A DNA stretch of 64,000 nucleotides from Macrostomum lignano (GCA_002269645.1 NIVC01000963.1:1-64000); one strand, 5' to 3'; positions 17,511-64,000 are shown, numbered from the stretch's first letter. Numbers and translations are program-made. The notes: generated by a model not told the origin, from the sequence alone.

Positions 17511-17614
17511 CTGCAATGTCGGAGCGAATTACTTTCAGCACTCACCGCTGGCTTAGCAGGGCTGGGAATATCACAAATCTCACTGTTATGCCGCATCTCA
17601 TCTCATCTTACGTC

Positions 17615-19040
17615 ACCCTATCTCACCGAATCCCCCCTATCTCCCCCTATCTCACCGAATCCCCCCAAATTCCCCTATCTCACCGAATCCCCCCTATCTC
17701 CCCCTATCTCACCGAATCCCCCCAAATTCCCCTATCTCACCGAATCCCCCCAAATTCCCCTATCTCACCGAATCCCCCCAAATTCCCCTATCTCACCGAA
17801 TCCCTCCAAATTCCCCTATCTCACCGAATCCCCCCAAATTCCCCTATCTCACCGAATCCCCCTATCTCACCGAATCCCCCTATCTCACCGAATCCCCCCA
17901 TCTCACCGAATCCCCCTATCTCACCGAATCTCCCTATCTCACCGAATCTCCCCTATCTCACCGAATCTCCCCTATCTCACCGAATCCCCCTATCTCACCG
18001 AATCCCCCTATCTCACCGAATCCCCCTATCTCACCGAATCCCCCTATCTCACCGAATCCCCCTATCTCACCGAATCCCCCTATCTCACCGAATCTCCCCT
18101 ATCTCACCGAATCTCCCCTATCTCACCGAATCCCCCCTATCTCCCCCTATCTCAACCTATCTCACCGAATCCCCCTATCTCACCGAATCCCCCTATCTCA
18201 CCGAATCCCCCTATCTCACCGAATCTCCCCTATCTCACCGAATCTCCCCTATCTCACCGAATCCCCCCTATCTCCCCCTATCTCAACCTATCTCACCGAA
18301 TCCCCCTATCTCACCGAATCTCCCCTATCTCACCGAATCCCCCTATCTCACCGAATCCCCCTATCTCACCGAATCCCCCTATCTCACCGAATCCCCCTAT
18401 CTCACCGAATCCCCCTATCTCACCGAATCCCCCTATCTCACCGAATCTCCCCTATCTCACCGAATCTCCCCTATCTCACCGAATCCCCCTATCTCCCCCT
18501 ATCTCAACCTATCTCACCGAATCCCCCTATCTCACCGAATCCCCCTATCTCACCGAATCCCCCTATCTCACCGAATCCCCCTATCTCACCGAATCCCCCT
18601 ATCTCACCGAATCTCCCCTATCTCACCGAATCTCCCCTATCTCACCGAATCCCCCCTATCTCCCCCTATCTCAACCTATCTCACCGAATCCCCCTATCTC
18701 ACCGAATCCCCCTATCTCACCGAATCCCCCTATCTCACCGAATCTCCCCTATCTCACCGAATCCCCCTATCTCACCGAATCCCCTCTATCTCCCCCTATC
18801 TCAACCTATCTCACCGAATCCCCCTATCTCACCGAATCCCCCTATCTCACCGAATCCCCCTATCTCACCGAATCCCCCTATCTCACCGAATCCCCCTATC
18901 TCACCGAATCTCCCCTATCTCACCGAATCCCCCTATCTCACCAAATCCCCTCTATCTCACCAAATCCCCTCTATCTCACCGAATCCCCCTATCTCACCGA
19001 ATCTCCCCTATCTCCTCCTCATAGAATCTCCCCCTATCTC
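17615..19040. repeat. 18-20-bp minisatellite CTATCTCACCGAATCCCC (intronic)
   Basis: Tandem units. Confidence 0.95.
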
Positions 19041-19659
19041 ACCCCTGAGCTAGCCGAATCTCACCTAATCTCACTTATAGACATACCCATAGATCTTATT
19101 CTTACATCCCATATGAGCTTTGACACCAAAGCCTCCCTTTAAGCCATGGCTTAACCTTCACTCTCCCTGTAATGCTTGGCCTACCAACAACTCCCAATTG
19201 GCCTCTTGGCATTTCAGCAAACCCATATAAGCCTTGAACTCTCAGCAACCCCCCCACGAGCAGTTGCATATTCCTGCTCCTAAGTAGCAATATAAGAATT
19301 TCGCCATATAAAATTGCAAGCTATTTAAAGCTGCAGTGACCAGCTCACAATTTCTGGGACTGCTCAATGCCAGTTTGAGCAACAGAGAAAATTTTGGAGA
19401 GCCGTTAGACAATAAAAAACAAGAATTTTTTAAAGCAGAGAAAAGTTGGCATCTTAGATAAGGCCAGAAGCAGTACACAAGACGGGTCAGGAGAGAGGGT
19501 GAGCCAGACAGAATTGTCACGAGAATGCGAAACTGATGTCGGATGCAGAGCTCTACAGACACTGTAGGTTGAGACTCGCTCAGGTACTAACATATCAGAT
19601 GGCTGACATGGGGTGAAGTAGGGTGAGCTGCAGTGAGATAAGCTTCAGGAGACAATGGT

Positions 19660-20688: not shown

Positions 20689-21117
20689 TTTGGTGACGGC
20701 CTTCGTGTCGGAGTCGAGCAGCCTCACGCCAGCCTGGGTGGAGTAGAGCAGCTTGGGGGCTCCCACAGCCCTGCAGCGGCGGCCGTCCTTGCCATCGGGC
20801 AGGTAGCCGGGCAGGCAGGAGCAGGCCGGGCCTGTCGGGGTGCTCCGGCAGCGGTGGTCGCAGGTGCCGAACTCCTCGGTGCACTCGTCAGCCACCTGGC
20901 AGGCGCCCGCAACGGAGCGGCGGCCCGGGGGCAGCCAGCCGAGTCTGGCAGGGCGGAAGCCGATGGGTCCGGCAGGGCGGTGGGCGCGGGCGCTGTGGCG
21001 CAGCCCCGCTCGTCGCTGCCGTCTGGGCAGTGCAGGAGGCCGTCGCAGCGCTGCTTCACTGGGATGCAGTGCTGCCCGTTCTTGCAGGTCCAGTAGGAGT
21101 CCGTGGCGCAGAGCACT
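20689..21117 (-). CDS. LDLR-family exon 3: LDLa repeat + EGF-A/EGF-B (contains a frameshift)
   Basis: CATDSYWTCKNGQHC...CDGLLHCPDGSDERGC, then after a frame change ADECTEEFGTCDHRCRSTPTGPACSCLPGY...RC. Confidence 0.8.
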
Positions 21118-21164
21118 CTGCGATTGGGATTGGGGAAATCACCTGTGCGACATCGCCTGAGGCA

Positions 21165-24100
21165 GACACCTACCTGTCTATGGGGCAGACACTCACCTGT
21201 CTATGGAACCGACACTCACCTGTCTATAAGGCAGACACTCACCTGTCTATGGGGCAGACACTCACCTGTCTATGGGGCAGAAACTCACCTGTCTATGGGG
21301 CAGAAACTCACCTGTCTATGGAGCAGAAACTCACCTGTCTATGAGGCAGAAACTCACCTGTCTATGGAGCAGACACTAATCTGTCTATGGGGCAGAAACT
21401 CACCTGTCTATGGGGCAGAAACTCACCTGTCTATGGAGCAGAAACTCACCTGTCTATAGGGCAGAAACTCACCTGTCTATGGGGCAGAAACTCACCTGTC
21501 TATGGAGCAGACACTCATCTGTCTATGGGGCAGACACTCACCTGTCTATGGAGCAGACACTCATCTGTCTATGGGGCAGACACTCATCTGTCTATGGGGC
21601 AGACACTCATCTGTCTATGGGGCAGACACTCACCTGTCTATGAAGCAGACACTCATCTGTCTATGGGGCAGAAACTCATCTGTCTATGGGGCAGAAACTC
21701 ACCTGTTTATGGGGCAGAAACTCACCTGTCTATGGAGCAGACACTCATCTGTCTATGGGGCAGACACTCATCTGTCTATGGAGCAGACACTCACCTATCT
21801 ATGGGGCAGACACTCACCTGTCTATGGGGCAGACACTCACCTGTCTATGGGGCAGACACTCATCTGTCTATGGGGCAGAAACTCATCTGTCTATGGAGCA
21901 GACACTCATCTGTCTATGGGGCAGACACTCACCTATCTATGGGGCAGAAACTCACCTGTCTATGTGGCAGACACTCACCTATCTATGGGGCAGACACTCA
22001 CCTGTCTATGAGGCAGACACTCACCTGTCTATGGGGCAGAAACTCACCTGTCTATGGGGCAGACACTCACCTGTCTATGGAGCAGACACTCATCTGTCTA
22101 TGGGGCAGACACTTATCTGTCTATGGGGCAGAAACTCATCTGTCTATGGAGCAGACACTCATCTGTCTATGGGGCAGACACTCACCTGTCTATGGGGCAG
22201 ACACTCATCTGTCTATGGGGCAGAAACTCATCTGTCTATGGAGCAGACACTCATCTGTCTATGGGGCAGACACTCACCTATCTATGGGGCAGACACTTAT
22301 CTGTCTATGGGGCAGAAACTCATCTGTCTATGGGGCAGACACTCACCTGTCTATGGGACAGACACTCACCTTATCTATGGGGCAGACACTCACCTGTCTA
22401 TGAGGCAGACACTCACCTGTCTATGGGGCAGAAACTCACCTGTCTATGGGGCAGAAACTCACCTGTCTATGGAGCAGACACTCATCTGTCTATGGGGCAG
22501 ACACTTATCTGTCTATGGGGCAGAAACTCATCTGTCTATGGAGCAGACACTCATCTGTCTATGGGGCAGACACTCACCTGTCTATGGGGCATACACTCAT
22601 CTGTCTATGGGGCAGAAACTCATCTGTCTATGGAGCAGACACTCATCTGTCTATGGGGCAGACACTCACCTATCTATGGGGCAGACACTTATCTGTCTAT
22701 GGGGCAGAAACTCATCTGTCTATGGGGCAGACACTCACCTGTCTATGGGACAGACACTCACCTATCTATGGGGCAGACACTCACCTGTCTATGAGGCAGA
22801 CACTCACCTGTCTATGGGGCAGACACTCATCTGTCTATGGGGCAGAAACTCATCTGTCTATGGAGCAGACACTCATCTGTCTATGGGGCAGACACTCACC
22901 TATCTATGGGGCAGAAACTCACCTGTCTATGGAGCAGACACTCACCTATCTATGGGGCAGACACTCACCTGTCTATGAGGCAGACACTCACCTGTCTATG
23001 GGGCAGACACTCATCTGTCTATGGGGCAGAAACTCATCTGTCTATGGAGCAGACACTCATCTGTCTATGGGGCAGACACTCACCTATCTATGGGGCAGAA
23101 ACTCACCTGTCTATGTGGCAGACACTCACCTATCTATGGGGCAGAAACTCACCTGTCTATGAGGCAGACACTCACCTGTCTATGGGGCAGAAACTCATCT
23201 GTCTATGGGGCAGAAACTCACCTGTCTATGGAGCAGACACTCATCTGTCTATGGGGCAGACACTTATCTGTCTATGGGGCAGAAACTCATCTGTCTATGG
23301 AGCAGACACTCATCTGTCTATGGGGCAGACACTCACCTATCTATGGGGCATACACTCATCTGTCTATGGGGCAGAAACTCATCTGTCTATGGGGCAGAAA
23401 CTCATCTGTCTATGGAGCAGACACTCATCTGTCTATGGGGCAGACACTCACCTATCTATGGGGCAGAAACTCACCTGTCTATGTGGCAGACACTCACCTA
23501 TCTATGGGGCAGACACTCACCTGTCTATGGGGCAGACACTCACCTGTCTATGGGGCAGAAACTCACCTGTCTATGGGACAGAAACTCACCTGTCTATGGA
23601 GCAGACACTCATCTGTCTATGGGGCAGACACTCACCTATCTATGGGGCAGACACTCACCTATCTATGGGGCAGAAACTCACCTGTCTATGTGGCAGACAC
23701 TCACCTATCTATGGGGCAGACACTCACCTGTCTATGAGGCAGACACTCACCTGTCTATGGGGCAGACACTCATCTGTTTATGGGGCAGAAACTCATCTGT
23801 CTATGGAGCAGACACTCATCTGTCTATGGGGCAGACACTCACCTATCTATGGGGCAGAAACTCACCTGTCTATGTGGCAGACACTCACCTATCTATGTGG
23901 CAGACACTCACCTGTCTATGGGGCAGACACTCATCTGTCTATGGGGCAGAAACTCACCTGTCTATGGGGCAGAAACTCACCTGTCTATGGAGCAGACACT
24001 CATCTGTCTATGGGGCAGACACTCACCTATCTATGGGGCATACACTCATCTGTCTATGGGGCAGAAACTCATCTGTCTATGGGGCAGACACTCACCTATC

Positions 24101-24411
24101 TATGGGGCAGAAACTCACCTGTCTATGTGGCAGACACTCACCTATCTATGGGGCAGACACTCACCTGTCTATGAGGCAGACACTCACCTGTCTATGGGGC
24201 AGACACTCATCTGTCTATGGGGCAGACACTCATCTGTCTATGGGGCAGAAACTCACCTGTCTATGGGGCAGAAACTCACCTGTCTATGGAGCAGACACTC
24301 ATCTGTCTATGTGGCAGACACTCACCTATCTATGGGGCAGAAACTAACCTGTCTATGTGGCAGACACTCACCTATCTATGGGGCAGACACTCACCTGTCT
24401 ATGGGGCAGAC
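21165..24411 (-). repeat. 23-bp minisatellite GTCTGCCCCATAGACAG|GTGAGT, ~140 copies, equal to the exon 2 / intron junction
   Basis: Unit = last 17 coding nt plus first 6 intron nt. Confidence 0.95.
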
Positions 24412-24827
24412 CTCGTCCTCGCCGTGCAGGCACTCGCTGATGCCATCGCAGACAAAGTTGATGGGCACGCAGGCGGGGTCCCGCGGCCCCTTGCCGGTGG
24501 AGAACCTGCAGGAGAACTCGTAGCTGAAGCCGCAGTTACCGCGGCCGGGACAGCCGATCTCGTCCTGGCCGGAGCTGCAGTCGATGGTGCCGTCACAGCG
24601 CACGCTGGCTTTGAGGCAGCGCCCGTCGCAGTGGAACTCGCAGTCGGCCGCGGCTGCCCGGCAAATGTCCGGCGACTCGTCCGAGCCGTCAAAGCAGTCC
24701 TTGAAGCCGTCGCAGACGAAGCTGCGGGTGACGCAGGACTTGCCGTCCAGGCAGCGGAACTGGTCGGGGCCGCAGGCTCCGCGGGCCACGGCCCCGGGCG
24801 CGGGGCAGTCCATCTCGTCTGAGTAGT
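24395..24827 (-). CDS. LDLR-family exon 2: LDLa repeats
   Basis: Three class A repeats (CDGFKDCFDGSDE, CDGTIDCSSGQDE, CDGISECLHGEDE); 433 nt, phase 1-2, matching exon 3. Confidence 0.9.
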
Positions 24828-31800: not shown

Positions 31801-34159
31801 TTAAGCGACATTGTCACAACCGGCGAGACGCATTACTGCCCATTCCGCCGACTCACCTGAGCAGGCACACAAGTGCGCGAATATAGTGTATGGCGCCCCA
31901 ACTTTATTTTTCGTTAGGCATGTACTTGGGGGTTGGATCTCAAGAGCGTTAATTGCAAGAGCAGATCGCCAAGCCGAGATTCCACAAGTTAGTCCCAAAT
32001 TAATGTGACTGAACTTGGAAACGAACCCTGGCCGCCGGCACGTAAGAGCGCTGAGCTATGACTACTGGGCACCCCAATAGCCTAACTCTTTAATTATCAG
32101 CCTAATTCAGTCATGCTCTAGAGTCTAGACTACTAAGGATACATTTAGCTGTTGATAGGATAAGTTGCCAAATCCTCTGCGAGAAACACTTGCTTCCCCA
32201 GAGTTCATTGCGGCGCAACTTTGGCTCTGAACAGATCGAGAGCATGGTCTTCACCTCAAGAAGACATCAAGACAGTTCCTGACTTCCTGATCGCCAAAGG
32301 GGGTGGGCGTTGTTCGTGGCAATTGTCGAGACCGTCTTGCTCAATTGAGCCAAGTCGTGGATTGTGGATGCTGAAATATTTGCAATTGGAGCTGACGGAG
32401 CTCATCTGAACCAATGCCAATCCATGTGCAACTAGTCGTACTTCATGTACTTTGATCTGGATCTGGTCGCTTTTGTTAATTACTTGATGACAAATAACAA
32501 TCATCAAACAATGAAGTGAATTGATTCAGTTAGTCCCGGATCTCGCACTCAGGGAAATTAAGACTCACTGCGGGCTCCGGTCTGTCTGTCGGAGAGCCTC
32601 TCCTACAAGCCTTCTCTAATACTTCCGTGAGCCTCCATTGCCTCATCCGCCCCTGCTGAGCACAAAAAACAGGAGGATAAAGCAGGTCACACAGTCTGAC
32701 GATACGAGAGGTCTGCAGCTTGACAACCGTTTTCACCCTTTCTATACGAGTAATTACACACCTATTTCCTTCACGCTAAAACTATTCAACTGGGAATGCT
32801 GCCGCCATTGTTTTGTGAGTCGCCATCTTTCTCTATCGTTCGTGGAGGATCTTTCTAATGGGAGGGGAAAAGTGAGAGAGAATCTGCTGGTATCACTTGG
32901 AGGGCATTAGAATACCAGCAGACTATTTGGGAGCTTTGACTTACTTTTGCCAAGTAGCTTTTCAACTTTTCAACGACTCTATTGAACAGCGCCGTGTCCC
33001 TATACTCGTAATTTCATAGGGGCCCAGTGCCGTCTGTCCTCTCCTGTCTGTCTGTCTCGCTCCAGTCAGAGCGAAAATTGCTGGGGAGGGAGACTTACGG
33101 GGAATCTGTGCAAGGGGGAAGTTGACCACTTTTATCTCGCCACGGAACTCTTCTGTTTACAGCCACGCCATGTCCTCTAAATTTGAGACGATTCTAGCCT
33201 GTCGATACGGGCCCAAGACTTCAAGACGCTTCCATGAAGGCATTCTTTTGCAGCAGTCTGAGCGCTCTCTTCTTGTATATTCGTAGAATGGATGAAGCTC
33301 GCGCCAGCTTGCGCCAGTGGAGGAGCTGCGCGGCGAACTCAGGTCACAGAGCATGCAATAGTAACACCTAATAAGCAGGGCATCATCAGGCATCTTCTAT
33401 TACAACAAGCGGGCTAAAGTTACAGTTCATTATCAATCACTTTCTCGAAAGCAGGGAAGTGAGAACGCGAGAGAAAATTGTTATACAGACGCGAAAGAGG
33501 GAGATTGAGATATTGAATGGAAAGAGTGACCACAAAAAGAAACGAAGTAAACTGCTCAGAGTCGAGTGCTATCAAGTGAGACACGAGCCTGTAGGAGGAC
33601 TCGACAGTCAGAGAATGAGGAGGCGCAGCAAACAATGTAGGGGCTGCGTTGAACTGATTTGGAGAAGTTTTGCTCAGCCACTCAGCGCCTATCACAATTT
33701 TCAATGCTACGGAGGGACTCGAAGGAAAAACTTCGGAGCCGAGATGCCAATTAAGACTCGGGTTTGGGGAACCGGTATAGCTCGCGCGAGAAGTGCCTGA
33801 CATCTGTGCTTCTGTGCGAAGCGAATTAAGAGCGGACTGTGCAGGCATTTGACTCGGTCAGCCAACCATTAATTAGCTTATTAGCTGGACATTTGGGCGA
33901 CTTCGTTGTTGTCCGATTTCCTTACTTCCAATTTCTAGTCAAGGACTGAGCAAGAGCAACATACCAGCTATCTCGTCCGCAGTGTCAACTCCCATCACTA
34001 CCAGTATAGTCTGGTCTGGTTTGAAAATGAGCCTTCTTTTCAAATGCAAAACGCATGGAAACAAAGTCTCTGATTTGCTAATTAATAAATTCTTGTATTT
34101 AGAGATTCTCTGACTCTGAAAGTCCGAGCCAGTCAGAAACGGTCAGAATCAGAATAAAG

Positions 34160-35628
34160 TGAAAATCAGTCAGAGTCAGTCAAATTCAGAGTCAGTCAGA
34201 GTCAGAGTCAGTCAGAGTCAGAGTCAGAGTCAGAGTCAGAGTCAGAGTCAGTCAGAGTCAGAGTCAGAGTCAGTCAGAGTCAGAGTCAGAGTCAGTCAGA
34301 GTCAGAGTCAGAGTCAGAGTCAGTCAGAGTCAGAGTCAGAGTCAGAGTCAGAGTCAGAGTCAGTCAGAGTCAGAGTCAGAGTCAGTCAGAGTCAGAGTCA
34401 GAGTCAGTCAGAGTCAGAGTCAGAGTCAGAGTCAGAGTCAGAGTCAGAGTCAGTCAGAGTCAGAGTCAGTCAGAGTCAGAGTCAGAGTCAGTCAGAGTCA
34501 GAGTCAGAGTCAGAGTCAGAGTCAGAGTCAGTCAGAGTCAAAGTCAGAGTCAGTCAAAGTCAGAGTCAGTCAGAGTCAGAGTCAGTCAGAGTCAGAGTCA
34601 GAGTCAGAGTCAGTCAGAGTCAGTCAGAGTCAGAGTCAGAGTCAGAGTCAGAGTCAGAGTCAGAGTCAGAGTCAGAGTCAGAGTCAGTCAGAGTCAGTCA
34701 GAGTCAGAGTCAGAGTCAGAGTCAAAGTCAGAGTCAGTCAGAGTCAGAGTCAGAGTCAGAGTCAGTCAGAGTCAGAGTCAGAGTCAGTCAGAGTCAGAGT
34801 CAGAGTCAGTCAGAGTCAGAGTCAGAGTCAGAGTCAGAGTCAGAGTCAGTCAGAGTCAGAGTCAGAGTCAGTCAGAGTCAGAGTCAGAGTCAGAGTCAGA
34901 GTCAGTCAGAGTCAGTCAGAGTCAGAGTCAGAGTCAGAGTCAGAGTCAGAGTCAGAGTCAGAGTCAGTCAGAGTCAGTCAGAGTCAGAGTCAGAGTCAGA
35001 GTCAAAGTCAGAGTCAGTCAGAGTCAGAGTCAGAGTCAGAGTCAGTCAGAGTCAGTCAGAGTCAGAGTCAGAGTCAGAGTCAGAGTCAGTCAGAGTCAGA
35101 GTCAGAGTCAGTCAGAGTCAGAGTCAGAGTCAGAGTCAGAGTCAGTCAGAGTCAGAGTCAGAGTCAGTCAGAGTCAGAGTCAGAGTCAGTCAGAGTCAGA
35201 GTCAGAGTCAGAGTCAGTCAGAGTCAGAGTCAGAGTCAGTCAGAGTCAGAGTCAGTCAGAGTCAGAGTCAGAGTCAGTCAGAGTCAGAGTCAGAGTCAGA
35301 GTCAGAGTCAGAGTCAGTCAGAGTCAGAGTCAGAGTCAGAGTCAAAGTCAGAGTCAGTCAGAGTCAGAGTCAGAGTCAGAGTCAGTCAGAGTCAGAGTCA
35401 GAGTCAGTCAGAGTCAGAGTCAGTCAGAGTCAGAGTCAGAGTCAGTCAGAGTCAGAGTCAGAGTCAGAGTCAGTCAGAGTCAGAGTCAGAGTCAGTCAGA
35501 GTCAGAGTCAGAGTCAGTCAGAGTCAGAGTCAGAGTCAGTCAGAGTCAGAGTCAGAGTCAGTCAGAGTCAGAGTCAGAGTCAGAGTCAGTCAGAGTCAGT
35601 CAGAGTCAGTCAGAGTCAGAGTCAGAGT
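34160..35628. repeat. Compound (GAGTCA)n/(GTCA)n microsatellite, ~1.5 kb
   Basis: Direct reading. Confidence 0.97.
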
Positions 35629-36130
35629 GATCAAATGACTTCTTCAAGCGCAATTAGGCAAGTGCGAGCACACAAACTTAATGGGTCGGATTGACAGAGA
35701 AAGTTTCATAAGTTCAATCATTTATGTTTTGACCATGCAGTTTAATATGATGAAATTTCCCACACCACATGTGAGCACAGCAATGCATTATATAAAGTTG
35801 CAACACGAGTGGATTGGATTCGTGCAGTGACAACCGGAAGCAAGGTATATAATACTGACTATATACACGCGCCCTTCGCTATTGTGACCGCTCAGGCATG
35901 TAACATGGGTGGGCAGCAGCTGCTCAATCAGTATGCAGTATGAACTATTAACAATTGGCAAGCGTGACATCATTCAGCAGACAGAGGAGAATAAGCAAAT
36001 TAGATAACGTCCACGACTGACGTGCTCTACCGGTATCGCTCGCACTTGGACTCCAAAACTAACAAGCATGCTGATGAATAACATTTAGAAAAAACGAAAG
36101 CAATCGGGTTAGAAATGTCGGCGAGTTTCA

Positions 36131-36509
36131 TCAATTTGTCTTCGATGGGTCCCAGATTGTTGACGAAGTTGCAGGAGCCGCTGCATCCCACGGGTATTGC
36201 AGCTGAAGCTGCGGCTGCTGCAGCATCAGGGATGTTGGCTGACTACTGGCCTGGAACTGAATGGCGTGCTGCGGCTGGGGCTGGGGCTGCGGCTGGGGCT
36301 GGGGCTGCGGCTGCGGAGTGCAGACCGCTCCTCTAAGCCGGACCTGGTGGGGGGGCACCCCGTTGATCACCTGGCCCATGAACCGGATGTAGGTGATGGC
36401 CAGCCTGAGCGTCTCAATCCGCGACAGTCGCTTCTCGAAGGCGAAGGTTGGCACCTTGGTGCGCAGCGTGTCGAAGGCCTCGTTCAGATTGAACATGCGG
36501 CGTCTCTCC
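36131..36509 (-). CDS. Fer3: Fer3/FERD3L (NATO3)-like bHLH, exon 2
   Basis: [41 protein letters not shown] is near-identical to the FERD3L bHLH; ctttgtcag acceptor. Confidence 0.92.
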
Positions 36510-36613
36510 CTGACAAAGTTTCCGGGGTGTTTTGTTTACAGTTAAGCAAATTAAATTAAGACTCGAAAAATTTCAGGAGCAAGGGTAGACAAGATTTTAC
36601 TTTCACAACTCAC

Positions 36614-37023
36614 CTGACATTTGCCGCTTTTCTCTGGGCCTGCGACGCCACTCGCTTGCGTTTTGGCTTCTGGGGCCGAGCGGCTTGCTGCTCCTGCTGC
36701 TGCAGCTGCTGCTGAGCCGGTTGCGGAGGGAACTGCGGCTGAGGGTACTGGGCGTACTCACAAGGCATTGAACAGAAGTACTGCGGCTGCTGCGGCGGCA
36801 CTGGCGGCAGCTGAGTCTGCAGCTCGTCGGGCTGCCAGCACTGAGCTGCCGTCTCTGGGACGAACAGAGCCGCTCCCGAAGTCTCCATCGAGGAGGTCAT
36901 GTTGGCTGCGCTGCCCACGCTGCCGATGCTGCTGCTGCTGCAGTTGCTGCTGAAATTGCTGATGCTGCTAGCGACCTCTGCCGCCTGCTGCTGGCTGGCT
37001 AGACACGCAGGGGACGTGGCCAT
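36614..37023 (-). CDS. Fer3: Fer3/FERD3L-like bHLH, exon 1
   Basis: ATG at 37023; S/Q/P-rich N-terminus; QRKAANVR with AG|gtgagt donor; phase 2 fits exon 2. Confidence 0.88.
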
Positions 37024-37265
37024 GGCTGCGGTCCTGTGCTCCGAGTATTCTGCCTCGGGCTGCTCCGGCTGCTCAAGAACGTGACTTCTAGCTGACTGGC
37101 TTCAAGTGTTTATTCGCCAATTGACACCAGCGAAGCTGCTGATCTGAGAGCAATTCGCGCGTGACTGGACTGCCTTTTTAGCGATGATGAGCTGGGGATG
37201 CGCGCTCTGAGGTTGTTCCGGCCTTGTCCCTCTGCTGCTCGGCACGTGCCTGTTGCGGCCTCCGC

Positions 37266-41693: not shown

Positions 41694-42579
41694 CTTGACC
41701 TTCTGATTCATAGCGTCACAATTTCTGTTGTGAGTTCATGTCTTTCTGGCAAGCCAATGTACGACGGCATCCCAGTCGGACCCGTCGGCAGGCCAGGATA
41801 ATTGATTCCCGGGAGGAATGGCAGCCGACAAAGGGAAGCAGAGCGAAACAAAGGGATTCCCGTGCAATCGCAGCGGATTCACAGAGTTGCAGGCAGACTT
41901 GTGCCGAGCTCAGGGCGACATTGTCAGGTCCAACTTTCCTTTTGCAATTCATTCAAAGACAACAATATTCAGACCGGAATGACAATGGAGAACAACACAA
42001 TGGTCACGTGACCAGATCAAGCGCTCCCGCGGATTCTTCGCGCCAAATTTGAGCAGAATTGATGAATTATAATCCGCTAATTAATCTGCAGAGGCTGTCA
42101 CATTTTTATTTGTTTTTCCCAATGGCGCTCAGGAAGCTCCGGCTCAGTCAGCAACCACGCGGGCAGCTGTCGGAGGGACATCTCTACGCTCGTATCGCCG
42201 TGGCTTCCAGACCAAACATTGCGGATCTGTTTATCATGGAAATTCGGGCATTTGGAGCCGGTACAGGACACGCATTTTATTCCTTATTATTTTTCCCCGC
42301 CTGCCAGCCACTCGGCTCTGTTTTGTTTCAATGCACGCAACAGGTTCGGTCTTGTCACCAAGGCAGCAGCAGAGGATTATTGAGGAGCTCTACCGGCTGA
42401 CTCAACGATTAATTCTCGACGAAAAGGAAGCAGGAAGTTCTGACTGGGAGAACTGATCAGTAAACACTGACAGTTGAGCTGCTTGGAATTTCTGCGGTGG
42501 AGATGTCTCTGGCTTATTGTTGAACCGTCTGCTTGTTGCATCCTTCTAGCAACCATACAATGTTGGTGCGGGTTCCGGC

Positions 42580-45885
<3,306 letters not shown>

Positions 45886-48800: not shown

Positions 48801-50073
48801 GCTGGGCAAATTATTCTGAAGAGAAGAAGAATTACGATTTTATTAGCAGAGCTACGAGAAGGGGACCCGCCGGGGGAGGAGGGGCTAGGGAAAGAGGAGG
48901 GTATAAAAGGCTATTTAAAAACACTGTAGCAGACGGGTTATGCATGACACAGTAAGTAAAACAGGGAGGAAGGCATAACCAAGGAGAGTAGAGGGTGGGC
49001 GCTGGAGTGGAGGAGAGGGAGGGCGCTGGAGTGGAGGAGAGGGAGGGCGCTGGAGTGGAGGAGAGGGAGGGCGCTGTAGTGGAGGAGAGGGAGGGCGCTG
49101 GAGTGGAGGAGAGGGAGGGCGCTGGAGTGGAGGAGAGGGAGGGCGCTGTAGTGGAGGAGAGGGAGGGCGCTGTAGTGGAGGAGAGGGAGGGCGCTGGAGT
49201 GGAGGAGAGGGAGGGCGCTGGAGTGGAGGAAAGGGAGGGCGCTGGAGTGGAGGAAAGGAGGGCGCTGGAGTGGAGGAGAGAGAGGGCGCTGGAGTGGAGG
49301 AGAGAGAGGGCGCTGGAGTGGAGGAAAGGGAGGGCGCTGGAGTGGAGGAGAGGGAGGGCGCTGGAGTGGAGAGAGAGGGCGCTGGAGTGGAGGAGAGGGT
49401 GGGCGCTGAAGTAGAGGAGAGAGAGGGCGCTGGAGTGGAGGAGAGGGTGGGCGCTGGAGGGGAGTAGAGGATGGGGGCTGGAAAGTAAAGGAAGAGAGGG
49501 TAGGGGCTAGAGAGGGGGAGGCGCTGGAGGTGGAAAGAGGGGATAGTAGAGGCTGGATAGGGAAAAGTATAACGCGGGAAGGAGAAGTATAGGAAAAGCA
49601 GGAGGGTATGGAGAGTATAGGGAGGGCATGGAGGGTATAGGGATGGTATGGAGGGTATATGGAGGGTATGAATGGGTATAGAAGGGTATGGAGGGTATAG
49701 GGAGAATATTGAGGGTATATGGAAGGCATAGAGGGTACAAGGAGGCCATGTATGGGTATAGAAAAAATATGGAGGGTATATGGAGGGTATAGAGGGTATA
49801 GGGAGAGTATTGAGGGTATAAGAAGGGTATAGAGAAGGTATGCAAGGGTGTAGAGAGGTATGGATGGATATAGGAAGTGTATGGAGGGCATAAGGGGTAC
49901 AAGGACGATATGGAAGTTAAAGGGAGGGCATGAAGAGTATACGGAGGGCATAAGGGGTACAGGGAGGGTATGGAGGGTATAGAACGGGTATAAAGGGGTA
50001 TAGGAATGGTATGGAGGGTATAGGGAGGGCATAAGGGATATAAGGAGGTATGGAGGGTGTAGAGAGGTATGGA

Positions 50074-50368
50074 CATACATGCGCAACGTCTAAAATTCGG
50101 TCGGCCGTGCGACTTAGTTTTAACAAAAATGCGACGTAGTTTTTGGCCAAAAATGCGACTTACATGTAAAAAACCCTAAAGCAAAATTAACGCAACTTTG
50201 GGTAAACGGCGGGAGTAACTATAACTGTCTTATCAGGCAAAAATGCCTCGTCAGCTACTTAGTACTACTGCGTGGGTATTTTTGGGTGGGCATTTTTGCG
50301 ACTTCCTTGGTTGGCTGCCAAATCAGTCGGCCGGATCGGCCGACTCGGCCGACTGTTGCGCATGTATG
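50074..50368. mobile_element. 295-bp MITE (hAT- or P-type)
   Basis: 14-bp perfect TIR CATACATGCGCAAC (50074-50087 / 50355-50368); 8-bp TSD GGTATGGA (50066-50073 / 50369-50376); subterminal TCGGCCG and AAAAATGCGAC repeats. Confidence 0.9.
50200..50263 (+). pseudogene. 28S rRNA fragment (helix 69-71 region, R2/I-PpoI target) inside the MITE
   Basis: GGGTAAACGGCGGGAGTAACTAT (23 nt) and AAATGCCTCGTCA (13 nt) match the eukaryotic LSU consensus as I recall it, at the correct 18-nt spacing. Confidence 0.88.
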
Positions 50369-52906
50369 GGTATGGATGGATATAGGAAGAGTATAGAGGG
50401 TATAGAGAGATTGGATAGGTATAGGAAGGATATGGAGGGTATGGAGAGATATAGGAAGGGCATGGAAGACATATTGAGGGAGGGTATTAAGGGTATAGAG
50501 TGTATAGGAAGGGTATGGAAGGTATAGGAAGGGTATGAAGGGTATAGGAAGGGTATGGAGGCATAGGGAGGGTATATAGGGAGGGTATAAATGGGTATAG
50601 GGAGATTATAGAGAGTATAGAGGGTATAGAGAGATATAGGGAGAGTATAGAGAGTATAGGAAGGTATGGAGTGTATAGAGGGTATATAGAGAGGATTAGG
50701 GTATAGGGAAGAGGTATGGAGGATGTAGAGAGATAAAGATGGGTATATGAAGGGTATGGATATGGAAGGTACAGAGAGAATATAGGGAGGGTATAGAGGG
50801 TATATAATTCTGCATCTAAAAAATTTGTTTCTTGGGTAAAAAAACAAAGCAAATTAGAAAACCTACTAAAAAAATAACAGGTCATTATTCCCTTAAGCTA
50901 TGTTAGCTATGGAAATTTTGCATTTAAAACAATTTCACCTATAGACTATTTTACCCCTAACTAAGCCAATTTGATTATGGCCACAATAATTTAGGGGCAA
51001 AAACAAAATTTAAATAACAAAAATGAGAATTTAATCAAAACATTCTTATTTTATAAATGTAGGCCTGGCCTAATGAAATTTTTTATGCTAGAAATTAACC
51101 ATTTAATTTTGTTTGGTTTTAAAAAATAAAATGCTTTGATATTAAAAGCTTATCCCCATGCATTAAAACTTGATTTATTTGGTAGGTCTATATTTAATGA
51201 TCAATGTGCTTCCCAACCCCATCAAGTTTGATTTTAATTTTTCTATGCCAATTGTTAAATAGGTTGTAAATTAGGCCTATCAAATAAAAAAATCAAAGTA
51301 CCTTAGTAATCTGCAATCACCCCATTCCAAATTTTCTGGATCCCAATCTGAAATGAAACCAATAGAATAGCCGAATAGGTCTAGTCTAGTCTAGTCAGTG
51401 TGGCAGAACCAGGTAGTAGGCCTAACGATGATGATATGATCTATTTTAATGATATTCTGACAATCCATCTATCTAGGCTAGCCCCCTAAGTCATATCTAA
51501 TATCCATATCTGTATTTTAGGGATCGCAGTCGCAGTCAGCTCAAACAAGCCTGCTGCTGGCACATATTGTACTCAAAATTAAGCATAGGCCCTATTCAAA
51601 ATTGATGATGTATCGAAAGTTGCTTTAGGAATAACTAACTCTGTACAGTGAAATGTATGTAACTCCCATTTTTTTATAAACGAATAGAAAGCAATACTAT
51701 TCAGTTGTGATTAGGCTACAATATTTCATTTAGACGGTACTAGTTTGTTTGTCATTGTGCAGGCAATATGTACGAGTATCCAGCATGCAGTAAAGGCAAC
51801 CAGCATGCTGGATATGCATGTTTATCGTACCTAAAATAGTGCTGAATTCGCGTATAAACTGCTGACACAATTGTGCTGAATTCGCGTATAAACTGCTGAC
51901 ACGGGTGATAATGGTTTAAAGTTTATGAACATGCGTGCAGAATTGAAAGTCTGCGACTGCGACGCCGCGCGCGCGCGCGACTTTCAGTATCAGTAGGAAC
52001 AGTGCAACGCAAGATATTAAGACTACAGTTCATTTCTTTTCTGTTTGTACTAATGTTCTGAGAGTCTGATGGTTGCCATGCATCAGTGCATAGGCCTAAC
52101 TCCAGGGGCCGCAAGCTGGGTATCCATGGTTGATTATTAAGTTGACGTCACGACCTGGCTGGCTAGAGTTTCGGAAAATTTGGATAGTTTATATAATTTA
52201 TATAGCCTATGTTGCATTTATAGGTTTTTCATATTTTAAATAGTTTTAAATATACATTTACTTTATTTGTTATTCTTATAAATTGAAATTGCTAGTTGAC
52301 TTACAATTAATGACCATTAATCAGGGGTCATTACTATTAAACCTATTAAATGACATGAAGTAAAATGAAATGACATTTTGATCTATGTTGACTTAGCTAA
52401 AATTGGTATAATAGGTTATATAGGCCTAATATATTATTACTGATTAGTGATTATTAGATGGAAAAAGTTTTCTAAATATAAAAAATCTTTTTTAATTTTG
52501 CTTATGTTATTTTCTTAAAACTTTCTTTGACAAGTATTAATGATAAAATTTGAATTTAATTTCTGATATTATTTAATTCATTTTCTAATAATTTTTGTTA
52601 TGTTAGAATGTCTAATAGTAAGTTTATGCTAGCATTGATGACTATGATATAAATTGTTTAGCTTTTTTAATTCTTTTATAAAAATGACTTACAAAAGTCT
52701 TAGTTTTTTATTATTGTAATACTATTATATATGCATGCATATATTATTATATATTATTGTATACTAGATTTTTGATAGAGCTCATTTTTGTTAACACTCA
52801 TCCTTATTCCTTATGTATGTTTTTTTTCAAAGAAGCATCCTTTGTTGTTTAAGATATAAACATTTAATCAAAATTAACTTTGGATCTACTTAGACTAGGC
52901 CTAGAG

Positions 52907-54944: not shown

Positions 54945-55330
54945 TTATTTTGTTCTTTTTGAGTTCTTGCTCAACAAATGACCTATTCGAGCACGCCTTG
55001 CTAACAAACACTGTCTTTTTGCAGCGTCCATTTCCGTAGTAGACTTTGCAACGCTTTGAAAGTCAAGGCTGCGATTCAGTAGACTCGATGAGGTCCTGAC
55101 AGTGACGAACAGGAGGGTGAAATCTCTTAGTGGCATCGCACTCCGTGTGTACAGGATCCAGGCGTTCCGTACCAGCTGCAGGAGGAAGTAGAACAGGAGC
55201 TTGTGGAACCACTTGTATGTGCGACGGTTGGTACGTGCTGCGTCTATCCTGTCCATTCCTCCCATGCGCTTGCTGTATGCTGCAACGCTTCAGCTTCAGA
55301 GCGTCCTCCGCTCCGATTATATCAAAGTGC
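54945..55330 (-). pseudogene. piggyBac (PGBD) transposase C-terminal relic
   Basis: YSKRMGGMDRID...RRTYKWFHKLLFYFLLQLVRNAWILY matches the piggyBac YN..MGGVD..D...KW..KLFF...NAWILY motif. Confidence 0.75.
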
Positions 55331-55798: not shown

Positions 55799-58263
55799 TG
55801 TTCAGTCACCCACCCCTAATCTCTGTCTGTGCTGAGTCAGTAAATCAATATAAATAAATACAACACCGCGCGTGGAGAGTTTCACGTGTCCTTCCTTTTC
55901 TACTTCTAACTACAATCACTCGGCTCATAACCTCACATTGGCGACGAGAAAATGGCTACAACTGGTAGAATTCCAGAACTCTCTGCAAACTCTGACATTG
56001 AGGTATACCTAGAGAGGCTCGAACAATATTTCATCTGTAAAGAAGTCCGAGACGAGGCGAAGGTCGCCACGCTGGTGACCGCCATCGGAGAAGACGCTTA
56101 CAAGGTTCTTCGGAATCTGTGCCTGCCGGAAACGGTGACCTCCAAGTCATACTCAGACTTAGCTGCTGTCTTGAGGGCACATTACTCTCCCAAGACGTCA
56201 ATGTTATCCGCCAGATTCCGCTTTCAACAGCGCGTGCAGAAGCCCGGCGAGAGTCTCGCGGACTTTATTGCTGGCCTAAAGGCTGCCTCGGAGCATTGCA
56301 AATTTGAGTTCACTCTGGACGGGTCAGACGGATCCCACTGCATCAGCACTCTGGACGAGAGACTGCGCGACCAGTTTGTCTTCGGTCTCCGCAGTGACGT
56401 GCACCGTGCAAAGCTGCTGGAGATCGAACAGCCCGACTTCAAGACGCTCGTGGCCAGAGTCGACGCATTGGAGGCAGCGGAGAAATCGTCGTCGGAGATG
56501 GCGCACCGTGCTGAAGCAGTCGCCCACCTGCGCCTCCACAAGAAGCCCACTGCGCCCGAAGAGCTCAACAAGCAGGCTCCCCGTCAGTCACCCGGAGCTC
56601 AAGCCGACGCTATGCGGGCAGCTGCTGCCTCAGGCGCGTGTGCAAGCTGCGGCGGCGCCCACAGTCGGCAGCAGTGCAAGCTTCGTGAGGCCAAGTGCCA
56701 CAACTGCGGCAAAGTCGGGCACATCCGCAAGGTGTGCAGGTCTTCAAATCTGCACAAGCTGGACCCAGAGCCGGCTGAGCTGCAGGAGCCCCTCTTCAGC
56801 ATTAGGCAGAGCGGATCGAGCAAGGGTCTGGCGGTCGAGCTGCTGCTCCAAGGCAAGCCATGTCGCTTCGAGGTGGATACCGGCTCCGCCCTCACCGTCA
56901 TCCCGAAGAGTCTCCAAGAGGATGTTCTGCCGGGTCTCCGTCTGTCGCCGACATCCACGGTGCTGCGCACCTACACGGGCGAGAGCTTTCGACCCATCGG
57001 ACAGGCAGAGGTCGCGGTTCAGCACAACGGCCAAGACCGGTGGTTGACGCTGCTTGTGGTCGAGCAAGGCGACGTCGCAGTACTCGGTCGCGACTGGCTC
57101 ACTGAGCTGAGACTGGACTGGTCGACGATCCTCGGTCAAGTCAACGCGGTGACCGGACAAGCTGCTGAACCTTGGGCGAGGCTGCACCTGGACTTCGCCG
57201 GCCCCGTTAACGGTCGCACGTACCTGGTCATCGTGGACGCCTTCAGCAAGTGGCCGGAGGTTCATCAGGTGCACAGCGTTACGTCTGCTGCCACCATCGA
57301 GCGACTCCGCGAGGTCTTCGCCAGACTGGGCATTCCCGGGTGTTGGTCTCCGACAACGGCACGCAGTTCACCTCCGCGGAGTTCGGCGAGTTCACAAGGC
57401 GCAACGGCATTCGGCATGTTTTCTCGGCGCCGTTCCATCCGGCAACGAACGGCCAAGTGGAGAGGTTCGTTCAGGTGCTCAAGCGACATCTGCTCAAGAG
57501 CGGGCACTCGACGGCGGCACTGCAGCAGATGCTGCTGTCCTACCGCAACACGCCGCACTCGATCACCGGCGAGGCTCCCAGCCAGCTGCTCATCGGCCGC
57601 AGACTGCGCAGTCGGCTGGACCTGCTGATGCCATCGCTGACGAACAGCATGGAGCAGCGCCAAGAGCGGCAGGTCGAGCAGCAGCCGCATGCGCGCGAGT
57701 TTCAAGTCGGCGACCGAGTTCTACTGCGTGACTTCAGCCCCAACGCAAAGGCTGGCGGCGGCACCCGCTGGGCGGAGGGCAGCGTCGTGTCCGCTGGATC
57801 CCGCAACTGCGACGTTGAGGTCGGCGGCGCTCTCCATCGGCGGCACACGGACCAGCTGCTGACGAGCTCGCTGCCAGAGGCCGACCCGGTGACGCCGGCC
57901 GCTGTCTCCGATGAACCGCATTCGCCGCCTACCGAGCAAAGCAAAGTCGACGGCGGCAATGACGCGCCGCAGGATGACGCGGCCACCGCCGCCGCTGACC
58001 GGCCGAGCAGTCCGGCGAGGCGCTATCCGCAGCGTCGGAGGCAGCCACCTGAACGCCTGCAACTTTGATCCTGAATTTGAACTGACTCTAACTTCGAACG
58101 AACTTTGCTAGGGGATGTTTCGAACTTTAGGGGGGAGATGTCAGATAGTTAGTTATGTGTATGGCTTGGCTAGGTCTCTCAGTTAGTTATTATTATTTGT
58201 TTATTTTTTAGATCTAGTGCACTTTTGCCACCCCAGTGTCGGTGGGGTTTGGAGTTGGTTATT

Positions 58264-60330: not shown

Positions 60331-63141
60331 TCCTGCTATCTCTTGGCTCAACCATAGACAAAATAAACCCACAGGAATGAGGAGATTGCTGTGGGAAGAG
60401 GGGTAAGGAGATTACAACTGAAAGCTAGTTTTCCATACAATAAAACAAAAAATGGGCTTTTTCAATTTCTAAAAACAAATTTTAATCCTGCACCCATGCC
60501 GCGTTGTCTATAGAAAAAATCAATCATGCTCGCAGAATCAAATAAGACTGCACTGAATCAAAGGTCTTTTGGCCATAGACTTTCACAGGGCCGTTCGCTT
60601 TTAACCTCGTTTCAGCATGCATAGGCTGACTGAAAGACACACTGTGCTGAATAAATGGTCTTCTCGATCAACTTTGTATTCTAAGAATCTCTTCTACTTT
60701 TGCATTCTAAGAATCTCTTCTACTTTCCCATAGATATTCACAGGGCCATTTGCTTAGGTGGTGGTGGCCGCAACCGAACCATACTAGCCATAGGAGCGAC
60801 ACTCTTAGCCTTTTGAGCACTATCCAGTTGACTCCTTCTTGACTGCTGCTCCTTTACCGCTAAGTGATCCTAGCTAGTAGCATGCGGTGCAAAGAAGCTA
60901 GCATGTTTGCAAGTAAGAGGTTTGTTGAATGTGAGGATTCATCTGTATTTAGGCCCACATGTGAATCATATGAATCCAACATTGATTCGCCAGATTTCAC
61001 TTCTCCTAGAGCTGGTGTGGCCCTAAATCATCAGCTGCACCAAGAGCCTCCTCCCCAGCCTCAGTTGACATAATGCTCAAGACAGAGAGTGATGCAGAGA
61101 AAAATGAAGAAAGCAGATAGTAAAGCACACACAAATACAAAAAAAGAAATGTCTGGCAGAGAAATTAAGAAAACCCAGAAGAACCTAAATCCTAATTCTA
61201 GAATGAGCATACAACCCACGAGCGAAGCTAATCTGCCAGATGGTCCCTATAGTAGCAGGCAAAAAGGGGCTAACCTGGGAATAGATTTGATTGATCTTAG
61301 TGCCAAGTTGTTGACCCAGGTGCCAAGCTGCAGCTGTGGGCCTAGTGTAGACCTGGATGCCAAACTGTAGGACAGATGCAGTTGCAGACTCAGTTGAAGA
61401 AGACAAATTAAACAGATGAATGGCGGTGATAGCCAAACCAATATTGTAGAATATGGAGAAGATGTAGCTCTTGAAGTACAGAATCCAGATGCAGTATTAA
61501 ACTTAAATCAATGTCTCTGTGGGACCTCCATTAATGTAGCAGAGCACTTGGTGCATTTCAAATAGTAAAAGAAAATGTCTGTAACTAATTTATTTAACCG
61601 TGAAATTTATTATTAATTATTCTAGGTTAGGCCTATTCATTTGATTGTATAGCTTATATCAATTGGAGCACTTGACAAATAATAATATAGCTTATATTGA
61701 AGTTACTTGGCACAATCTTGGGGGCAGTTGAGTTGCTAAGTCTGATCTAATGTTTAATTCGGTTTGGGTTGGCTCTATAGCATAATAGGGGAAATAGTCT
61801 TGTCTGGTATCACTGGAACACGGTAACGATCGGCATGCCAAGCGCAAGGAGGGAGAGGAAGAGCCTACACCAAAAACACGAAACACCGCACTCAAAACCG
61901 TGCCAAAACTGACCCCCTATAGCCTCAAATCCTAACTGCAAAAAGTGGTAACCAAAATAATAGAACAGTAGATAAAATAATAGACAGAATTTTCCTAGAA
62001 CTAAACATAAAAGGGCTTCTCCTAAACCCATTATTACAAAAAATCAATTTAAGTACACTAAAAATGGATAGAAACAAAAAAATATTATAGTAATCTGCCC
62101 AGCTATTGCCATAATGTCTGGTTGACGAATGCCGGTTGACGAAATGTCCGGTCACCGAAATGCTGCACAGACTTCATTATACTCATCGAAAAGCAATTTA
62201 GACTGATACTGTTGTTAAAATGATTATTCACACTAAAGAATAACTCTAGTAGAAAGCAATTTACTGAAGCAGTATTGACTAATATTTCTCACTCAACGAT
62301 TTGTTATAATTTACAGTTTTAAATAGTAGAAAAAGGTTTAGACTGACTATCTAGTCGGTTAAAATATTAGAACAGGGTTTTTATAACACTAATCGATTTT
62401 AGGAAGAATATTTTGTAATTTGTTTTGTTTTACTGATCATGAGGACGTTACGTTAAAATGGCGCTTAAAATAATTTTAAGTCATTTAACGATATTTTAAG
62501 CCATAAGCTACTCGAATGCACCCTTTATATTCTTAGCAAAAATGTCAGTGCTACGCGTGAAAAATTCAAATTTTCAAATACTTTTTCTACGGCTTGTAAT
62601 TTTATGCAGAAAAACAAATTTATAAACTTATTGGCTATCAGAACTTTGACTGGCACTGAAAGCTTCTAACAATAACCCAATTTTGATATTTATTTTTTTA
62701 CAGAAGTTTAGGTAAAAATCAACTTTTTCTTAAAAACGATAACAAGTTTATTGGCTTTTGAAAAAAATTGAACCTTAATAACCTTGGCTTGAGAATACGA
62801 ATTCATCACGAGCGAAATCGAATTTAAAGCAATTGTCTGAAAAATTACAAGAAATTTAAAGACGGCATATTCAAAGGTAAGCTGCATCAACCCACACTGA
62901 GCAAATTTCTGCATTCGTGAATCAGGTTTGATTTTAGGATTCATAAAAAGGTTTATAAAGTTTTTGAAAAGATACTACAATCTTATTTGTTGATGTACAT
63001 GTAGATCAAAATGTCATCAGGATTCCAGTATTACGTACGAGCCTCTATTTCACCTCACCTCTGAATGCTCACTCGCCGATGCGCGCTCAACTAACTTGTT
63101 TTACTTTGAAGTTTTGAGTTTTTACCCCCTTTGCGATGCAG

Positions 63142-64000
63142 GAGCAACCAGCCAGGACGGCCGGTGCTCACCGGAGCTCTGCTGGATGTGTCCGGCTCCA
63201 TGGAGCGGACGTTCGACAGCCGGCAGGTGGTGGGGGCAGCCAAGCAAAAGTGGGTCAGATCCATATTTCGAGTCGGTGATCAGCTGGTGAAAAAAGATGT
63301 ATCTGAAGCTAACCGGGTGTTTATGCTTGGCGTGGGGGCTCACAATGAGCCACAGGTGTTCGATGTTCTGGCGTCCATTGAGAAGGCTCGTGAGCGGGAG
63401 GAGAGGATTCGTCAAATTCAAGAGAGGTTTACATTGGATCAAATATTTGATGAAGCACTTGATATACTTCAAAGCAGTGGCGCTCCACGAGTTCGAAACT
63501 GGGCCAGGAGGAGTGTGCTGCGCTCCGTTGTCGACATTCAGACAGCCAGTATCATCCTCGACGCCCTTCGAACTGACGATGATTTTAAAGAAACATTAGC
63601 GAAACAAATTCTGCCTGATCAGTGCAGAGAATTCAAAGCCTCAAAAATTGTTTCTGAGGGATTTAATGTTTTTGGAAGAATTGCCTCTTACACGCCATTA
63701 GCACTGATTTCAAACACCGTAATGGACGGGGCAACGGAGGACAGCATGAAAAAAGTTGTTGCAGACTGTGAGAATTATTTGAAGCAGAAACGCTCGCTAG
63801 AGTCCGTTTCGGTGCGATCAGTTGTTTCTGTGACAGAAGCAGAGCAAATTCTGAACTCTGGCGGTAACAGACAAGAAAATCTGACTGATAAAAAAATCGA
63901 CGAACTTATTAAAGCCATTGAGCCCTGCATCTACGGAGCAACTCCTTTGTTAGCTTCTCTCATGCAGTCCATAATACTGTTTAGCCACGCATCCTACAAG
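63142..64000 (+). CDS. vWA-domain protein (open at the window end; absent from the ORF track)
   Basis: Manual translation is stop-free for ~286 codons: LLDVSGSM (MIDAS DxSxS, D at 63185) and IEPCIYGATPLLASL (vWA G.TPL motif); possible acceptor tgcag at 63141. Confidence 0.8.

Follow-up and report, generated by a model that had tools for sequence, protein, structure and literature searches.

Non-autonomous DNA transposons capture fragments of genes, for instance by transduplication of the Pack-MULE type or as filler DNA during the gap repair of hAT, P and Mutator elements. Modules derived from rDNA are already well known in non-autonomous transposable elements (TEs), as in 5S-containing SINEs and TRIMs, in SINE28 and in the IGS repeats of Pokey. 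They are common products of modular reshuffling and mostly bring no benefit to the TE (PMC10946416). Pokey of Daphnia, a DNA transposon of the piggyBac superfamily with MITE derivatives (mPok), inserts at a TTAA inside CTCTCTTAAGGTAGC (PMC3315735, PMC4912750, PMC10946416). The same sequence is the recognition site of I-PpoI and I-Vdi141I (PMC2602781).

This region of the 28S gene is also the target of R2. The bottom-strand nick corresponds to AAGG^TAGCC on the top strand, as deduced from the oligonucleotides used, and the standard 60-bp target for in vitro experiments is CAAGCGCGGGTAAACGG...GCCTCGTC (PMC13000458). Target recognition by the R2 of Bombyx (R2Bm) needs the RUM at −34 to −22 and the RASIN, T(−6)TNANN^T(+1); mutation of T(+1) abolishes cleavage, and the spacing between RUM and RASIN tolerates a change of only +1 (PMC10499050). 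Among free-living flatworms, R2 elements are present in Schmidtea and Nematoplana according to the host table in the supplement of PMC13188248.

Here, we describe a short TIR element from the flatworm Macrostomum lignano that carries a piece of 28S rDNA around this very target. In our preferred reading, to which we give a probability of roughly 0.55, this is a non-autonomous TIR element that inserted recently by means of a transposase acting in trans, and its passive cargo is an rDNA module, an older repeat that is dispersed in its own right.

Results

The locus

The window, by which we mean the whole stretch of 64 kb of M. lignano DNA that was analysed, contains an exon of a Fer3-like bHLH gene, LDL-receptor repeats, a piggyBac remnant, an LTR element and a Polinton-like region. 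The exon agrees fully (100% identity) with the M. lignano protein BOX15_Mlig000937g1, and contig NIVC01001541.1 aligns to window positions 48899-25288 with up to 99.6% identity, the stretch compared ending 1.2 kb before the element described below. The bHLH gene (36134-37101, minus strand) corresponds to BOX15_Mlig000937g1/g2 and has nine PQ repeats after the bHLH, compared with five in the public protein. A second copy of the locus, on NIVC01002014.1, loses its similarity to the window beyond position 47259 (position 2569 of that contig); this breakpoint is a structural difference, an insertion or a rearrangement, between duplicated copies in a hidden-polyploid genome.

The first 6400 nt of the window form an AT-rich block (~34% GC) with long intact ORFs. 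One is a D5-like primase/helicase (1123-2469, plus strand; match to a PHROG DNA primase with E~1e-28), another a polB-like ORF of 705 aa (3438-5555, minus strand) with an endonuclease-VII-like zinc module at aa ~363-438, and further ORFs lie at 2875-3576 and 5581-6351, both on the minus strand. The block resembles a young element, Polinton/Maverick-like or endogenous viral, that the window edge cuts off; the primase/helicase-like and the polB-like proteins were absent from a public protein index in an exact look-up. Very long GC-rich minisatellites are found at 17000-19150, 21400-24800, 34150-35700, 42500-43900 and 48986-49482. Several of their frames are open, giving mechanical ORFs of 400-690 aa, but they are not genes; they lie between LDL-receptor-like exons on the minus strand (16.9-17.5 kb, 20.7-21.2 kb and 24.4-24.9 kb).

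The piggyBac-type transposase remnant (54948-55289, minus strand) is adjoined by a degenerate gag-protease-integrase ORF of an LTR retrotransposon (55952-58100, plus strand), which shares 48% amino acid identity with M. lignano Mlig033860g5 and 72% nucleotide identity in the integrase. ORFs at 53.3-53.8 kb had no relatives in the PDB. At the end of the window, an open frame of 297 codons (63110-64000, plus strand) begins with a DxSxS motif of the vWA type (LLDVSGSM) and runs off the window. Its closest relatives, unnamed ENA proteins and a protein of Acropora, are 34-37% identical; no M. lignano protein matched it and it appears to be unannotated in the public assembly.

A TIR element in a minisatellite array

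At 50074-50368 a non-satellite stretch of 295 bp breaks into a minisatellite array (Table 1). A preliminary description had reported an element of this size with 14-bp TIRs and an 8-bp TSD; indeed, the TIRs are perfect and GGTATGGA stands on both sides, so that the stretch is confirmed as a genuine non-coding TIR/TSD element. The longest open frame has 81 codons and there is no transposase ORF; the 81-codon frame, which spans the 28S block, had no homologue in an index of 5.8 billion proteins, and no ORFs straddling the element are on record.

Table 1 Features of the element, of its 28S-derived block and of the surrounding array (window coordinates).
Feature	Position	Strand	Evidence or remark
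Host minisatellite (GGAGGGTATGGAGGGTATAG)n, sloppy, holding the insertion	49600-50700	.	TRF
Left TSD, GGTATGGA	50066-50073	.	same 8-mer flanks the other end
Left TIR, CATACATGCGCAAC	50074-50087	+	14/14 complementary to 50355-50368
Left subterminal TCGGCCG motif, near-palindromic	50101-50107	.	one copy left, three right
Left subterminal tandem repeats, period 22-24, (CAAAAA)TGCGAC[G/T]TA	50108-50173	+	repeat search, TRF period 24, regex
28S rDNA-derived block, sense orientation	50186-50263	+	nhmmer E=1.7e-13, 52/64 identity, E. coli 23S match
RUM equivalent, GTAAACGGCGGGA (−34 to −22)	50202-50214	+	13/13 identical to 28S
Altered octamer, TCAGGCAA replacing AGGTAGCC	50233-50240	+	removes RASIN A(−3), T(+1) and the I-PpoI core
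Downstream 28S sub-block, AAATGCCTCGTCAGCTACTTAGT	50241-50263	+	21/23 identical to 28S
11-nt inverted repeat	50237-50299	.	GCAAAAATGCC (50237-50247) versus GGCATTTTTGC (50289-50299), repeat search
Fourth TGCGACTT unit, right arm	50297-50305	+	motif coordinates
Right subterminal TCGGCCG(A/G), three copies	50327-50352	.	repeat search
Right TIR, exact reverse complement of CATACATGCGCAAC	50355-50368	-	14/14 perfect
Right TSD, GGTATGGA	50369-50376	.	identical to left 8-mer
Core sequence, 28S			GACTCTCTTAAGGTAGCCAAATGCC
Core sequence, window module			AACTGTCTTATCAGGCAAAAATGCC
Core sequence, L124 module			TATACATTTTAATGACAAAAATGCC

The host sequence is itself repetitive, with 13 occurrences of GGTATGGA in 806 nt, and the inverted and direct repeats could be chance features of the minisatellite with no mobile element involved. 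However, the perfect 14-nt inverted repeat exactly abuts the 8-nt direct repeat, and the interior of 295 bp is non-satellite and interrupts the array. With up to two mismatches allowed, 0.4 matches to the TIR 14-mer are expected in the 64 kb; both exact ends are present and no third match was found across the window. Across 790 positions of the array, two identical 8-mers stand side by side just three times, so the TSD is real and no by-product of the array. We consider a chance arrangement very improbable. A satellite at 9900-10500 (minus strand) has units, AAYACATGCRCRCC, that resemble the TIR at 11 of 14 positions; this likeness was judged to be due to chance, though it inflates background counts of TIR-like sequences.

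The left subterminal repeat units start at 50108, 50130 and 50154 and are candidate transposase-binding sites. On the right, the TCGGCCG(A/G) copies form a 16-nt palindromic pair at 50324-50355. Four nucleotides of GCAAAAATGCC, the left arm of the 11-nt inverted repeat, are supplied by the altered octamer. As single-stranded DNA the element folds far more stably than shuffled sequences (z=−5.9) because of the TIRs and the GC-rich palindrome on the right. The RNA fold of 50186-50310 uses the 11-nt inverted repeat and is unremarkable (z=−2.2).

As to the superfamily, a TSD of 8 bp is what hAT elements make. hAT TIRs open with 5'-YARNG and their TSDs follow the consensus nTnnnnAn; the TIR described here starts with CATAC and in GGTATGGA the second and the seventh position are G, and because of this misfit the element is not filed as hAT. 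TSDs of about 8 bp are also made by P, Mutator-like, Merlin and Zisupton-type elements. A single remnant of a transposase was seen in the neighbourhood, and it is piggyBac-like. In place of the TTAA duplication of piggyBac and Pokey the element has GGTATGGA. Perfect TIRs, a fixed 8-bp TSD and the lack of a tail also set it apart from retroposons of the SINE28 type.

Origin of the central block

The centre of the element was compared with an LSU profile built from 69 distinct 471-nt segments, which are real eukaryotic sequences from contaminant contigs and not the 28S of M. lignano itself. A 71-nt LSU string around the R2 site is present without change in at least 120 eukaryote-contaminated contigs of a prokaryotic genome collection, and two of the source contigs were verified to contain complete LSU_rRNA_eukarya genes (RF02543). 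The block was the single match of this profile in the window, the runner-up having E=3.6. Without gaps, 50200-50263 aligns to real eukaryotic 28S with the identities given in Table 1; this is the solid core of the block, and the piece derived from 28S has a length of ~65-80 nt.

In E. coli (all 5,426 genomes), genes annotated as 23S rRNA agree with 50201-50232 (32 nt) at 90.6% identity. Since the eukaryotic match is far longer, the source was nuclear 28S, and an origin from bacterial or organellar LSU was rejected (32 nt matched by E. coli 23S versus 78 nt by the eukaryotic profile). Rfam cmscan, applied to the window and separately to 49900-50560, gave no match at the gathering threshold or at E<=10; the blank at the block is explained by the filtering out of a short fragment of a long model. 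With only ~78 nt homologous and no covariance-model match, this is no functional LSU rRNA gene (RF02543). Compared with a complete rDNA unit, neither arm of the element scored above shuffled sequences. An origin of the left arm from the upstream LSU region 'GACTGTTTAATTAAAACAAAGCATTGCGA' appeared in lenient-gap alignment only and was discarded. Judged by its sequence, the block is confirmed as genuinely 28S-derived cargo.

The lesion across the R2/I-PpoI site

In the ungapped comparison, the exchange of the octamer leaves the length of the block unchanged, and outside the octamer 52 of 56 positions are identical to 28S. The profile alignment reads the lesion instead as TTA[+TC]AGG[TAGCC->CAA]. 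Since the 12 mismatches in 64 positions include one run of eight (P~6e-6 if they were placed at random), the lesion appears to be one complex event. The block is centred on the 60-bp in vitro target of R2 and is nearly co-extensive with it; the target falls almost wholly within the block. At the place of the I-PpoI site the window reads CTGTCTTATCAGGCA, which is identical to CTCTCTTAAGGTAGC in 8 of 15 positions.

These data bear on several statements of the preliminary description. Its 52 identities in 64 positions were reproduced, and the doubt it had raised itself, that the similarity to real 28S might not be significant, is removed by the profile match (E=1.7e-13). The octamer swap without a change in length was found again at 50233-50240, and the published substrates place the R2/I-PpoI target where the description had put it (PMC13000458, PMC2602781). 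That the block is 'mutated exactly at the R2 site' holds in so far as the lesion lies on the core. The coincidence is less striking than this wording implies: an 8-nt lesion put down at random would take in the R2 nick ~12% of the time, and the derived 9-mer CAAAAATGC, which stands where 28S has GCCAAATGC, matches a repeat of the element itself. Two units of the left subterminal repeat have this 9-mer at their head, and an inverted copy is found in the right arm. Moreover, the block resembles in its right half, CAAAAATGC-CTCGTCAGCT-ACTTAGT, the repeat unit CAAAAATGC-G-ACTTAGT plus ~9 extra bases. The location of the lesion would thus have a mundane reason, the match to the subterminal repeat suggesting an internal conversion event.

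A second 28S module and the search for further copies

Four unrelated contig stretches of M. lignano, ~88 kb in total, were sampled. One of them, L124 (NIVC01000010.1), contains a second 28S-like block at 21690-21752 (E=6.7e-8 against the LSU profile) that is 80% identical to the block in the window. It sits in the AT-rich first intron of a gene for a poly(A)-binding protein (PABP; exon at 20870-21118). Both modules share the ends GGTAAA...TTAGTA, and the core is disrupted in each (Table 1). The differences from 28S cluster within 18 nt at the centre (Fisher test, p=1.4e-5 in the window module and 1.8e-6 in the L124 module); in both modules the flanking sub-blocks are 93-96% identical to 28S, the core only 33-44%. 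These two copies are what the evidence on the module consists of.

The two modules depart from 28S at the same positions more often than expected (p=0.001). There are nine such co-differing positions, and at six of them the derived base is the same, including +1, +3, +4 and +5; +29 likewise has a shared derived base. The test for identical bases gave p=0.04 with a chance of 1/3 per site and p=0.25 with an A/T bias. Upstream of the R2 nick, the two modules differ from each other. The simplest reading is that a common ancestor already carried the lesion from the nick onwards and that separate changes would have followed upstream. Since it recurs in a second place, with boundaries and derived bases in common, the 28S module is a dispersed repeat and not a one-off capture.

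Could the two modules have nothing to do with each other, the one being a private capture by the element and the other an independent stray fragment of rDNA? The arms around them gave no significant alignment under three scoring schemes, and the test for identical bases gave the p values just cited. This assumption would, however, leave unexplained the shared boundaries, the derived bases common to both modules and the excess of co-differing positions. In addition, a short stretch that looks homologous, AAATG.G..CTTA.ATGTAAAAAA, is found just upstream of both blocks, and stray fragments, if rare, would hardly be met a second time in an independent sample of ~88 kb. Coincidence has therefore little probability in our view.

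No recognisable element ends were found around the intronic copy. GCATGTATG, which resembles the TIR and lies 34 nt downstream of the module in L124, is part of a local repeat of ~450 bp and was discarded as evidence for a TIR, because the other copy of this repeat has no block. The two copies of the repeat (L124 17905-18460 and 21785-22341) are 70-76% identical and open near ...CATGTATG, followed by several TTGGCATACAAATTTTGG-like units. The repeat is possibly another non-autonomous element; its terminal 8-mer is the reverse complement of CATACATG in the element of the window.

The full element itself was present once in the window. No further copy sharing its TIRs or arms came to light in ~150 kb of M. 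lignano DNA (the window plus the ~88 kb), and an autonomous partner with the same TIRs was found neither in the window nor in the sampled M. lignano loci nor in metagenome and viral collections. The TIR-gap-TIR pattern and the 20-mer made of the TIR plus six nucleotides had 0 matches in metagenome contigs, and a diagnostic 23-mer of the element had 0 matches in viral contigs. The view of the preliminary description, that a MITE family disperses the 28S module, is therefore not supported by these data: there was no second copy of TIRs or arms in these ~150 kb and the arms of the two modules show no significant alignment. Nor did the partner that it proposed to trace through the TIR turn up in these sources. 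The roles that it suggested for the 28S block, as a decoy or landing pad, as a source of rRNA-like small RNAs or as a relic of an ancestor that targeted rDNA, are speculative. On the other hand, a one-off capture, which it had named as the finding that would speak against it, is countered by the core-disrupted module on an unrelated contig. From one hit in ~88 kb we estimate that the number of modules could reach thousands in a genome of several hundred Mb, with a range of two orders of magnitude.

The modules and the rules of R2 recognition

Judged by the rules for R2Bm, which may not transfer to the R2 of flatworms, the module in the window has a complete RUM (13/13) and a broken RASIN, which reads TTATCA^G with A(−3) and T(+1) gone. 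In the gapped reading the spacing between RUM and RASIN is changed by +2 and position +1 is C. The L124 module has kept 12 of 13 positions of the RUM, the change being C−29 to T toward the W of the published consensus, and has lost T(+1). With the RUM kept and the RASIN broken, both modules would be 'recognisable but uncleavable' for R2Bm.

It is tempting to speculate that this pattern goes back to R2. The modules would then be dispersed 28S targets that keep the motif for recognition and have the motif for cleavage destroyed, either as mis-repaired scars of off-target cutting by R2, for which no function is needed, or as a retained sponge for the R2 protein. The state of RUM and RASIN is as expected from this idea, both copies have their changes gathered at the core and are unlike one another upstream of the nick, the block has almost the extent of the in vitro substrate, and R2 exists in free-living flatworms, as mentioned above. 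Nevertheless, we regard a link to R2 as unlikely. There are two copies only, and the rules applied were derived from an insect and may not hold for the R2 clades of flatworms. The shared derived bases from +1 to +5 fit one ancestral lesion, not recurrent cutting, and the lesion lies downstream of the nick, where the junctions of R2 insertions are as a rule precise. The match of CAAAAATGC to the repeats of the element offers an explanation without R2, and M. lignano is not among the hosts in the rows covered of the table in the supplement of PMC13188248. The more special assumption that DNA transposons spread uncleavable mimics of the R2 target through the genome, as a record of off-target cutting or as a genome-wide sponge that would draw the R2 protein away from the rDNA, seems quite doubtful to us; it would amount to one transposon bearing a decoy for the site-specific endonuclease of another.

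The module could also be useful to the transposon or the host in another way, which would account for its conservation in the transposing lineage, for instance as a transposase-binding or enhancer site akin to the subterminal repeats, as a signal for transcription or processing, or as a source of rRNA-like small RNAs. Such a role would fit with sub-blocks that are far better conserved than core or arms in two diverged copies, with the resemblance of the right half of the block (CAAAAATGC..ACTTAGT) to the subterminal repeat unit CAAAAATGCGACTTAGT and with the 11-nt inverted repeat that takes in the altered bases. But the RNA fold around the block is unremarkable, there is no match to an Rfam family, and the L124 copy is intronic and lacks recognisable element ends. 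We consider a benefit of this kind rather improbable.

Discussion

The most probable explanation is, in our opinion, that the 28S module is passive cargo. A transposase acting in trans would mobilise the element; its putative binding sites are the 14-bp TIRs and the repeats next to them (TGCGACKTA and TCGGCCGR, four copies each), and it would make an 8-bp staggered cut at the target. The 28S piece most likely entered the transposon via template switching or capture of filler during gap repair ('modular reshuffling') and, once inside, would have been carried along passively. The module probably descends from an ancestor in which +1 to +5 were altered (TAGCC -> G/R-CAA). The lesion of the core is plausibly due to a short-patch conversion or a template switch against the subterminal repeats headed by CAAAAATGC, followed by local decay. 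Such a conversion may have been seeded by AAATGC, which is common to the block and the repeats, and would place a lesion beside the R2 nick without any involvement of R2.

Some observations count against passive cargo. Conservation is uneven, with sub-blocks close to 28S on both sides of an altered core and with arms that are not alignable between the two copies, and purely neutral cargo should decay evenly. Furthermore, a random draw of ~80 nt from an LSU of ~3.4 kb would, by our estimate, include the R2 site only ~2% of the time.

If the module turned out to be abundant, with a conserved RUM and independently broken cores, it would be a natural record of off-target R2 activity or a brake on it. 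A link to R2 would then bear on how the specificity of R2 is policed in genomes and on targeted insertion with R2-based systems, where off-target RUM-RASIN sites matter. If the module is passive filler only, it adds modestly to the host fragments known to be captured by DNA transposons and is useful for the annotation of repeats in M. lignano.

How does the element compare with known systems? Captures of the Pack-MULE type or by filler DNA are also short, pseudogenic, non-coding host fragments between transposon ends, and this is most likely the route by which the 28S cargo originated. They are usually specific to a family or a copy and decay evenly, whereas the 28S fragment recurs in a different context and is unevenly conserved around a known endonuclease site. 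Like mammalian SINE28 and the 5S-derived SINE3, Cassandra and Ajax, the element is non-autonomous and the rRNA-gene module is spread in the genome (PMC10946416, Table 2). Those are retroelements with an RNA intermediate and without TIRs, in contrast to the TIR/TSD DNA element described here, and the 5S modules of SINE3, Cassandra and Ajax supply a pol III promoter, whereas the 28S piece has no known promoter role. With the R2/I-PpoI target in the LSU rDNA the block has in common that it covers −36 to about +28 of the nick, with an intact RUM and the whole of the I-PpoI site; it differs in the broken RASIN, the replaced I-PpoI core, the location outside the rDNA and the lack of an R2 insertion.

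A TIR element with a genic 28S R2/I-PpoI target is not among the catalogued cases (PMC10946416); Table 2 of this 2024 review of rDNA and TEs agrees with the earlier statement that no described TIR MITE with this cargo was known. A close counterpart is Pokey, likewise a class II element that is tied to the same 28S region, has internal sequence derived from rDNA and has given rise to MITEs. Unlike Pokey, which has a TTAA TSD and carries IGS repeats, the M. lignano element has an 8-bp TSD, no piggyBac-type ends and genic 28S cargo that includes the target site, and it is inserted outside the rDNA.
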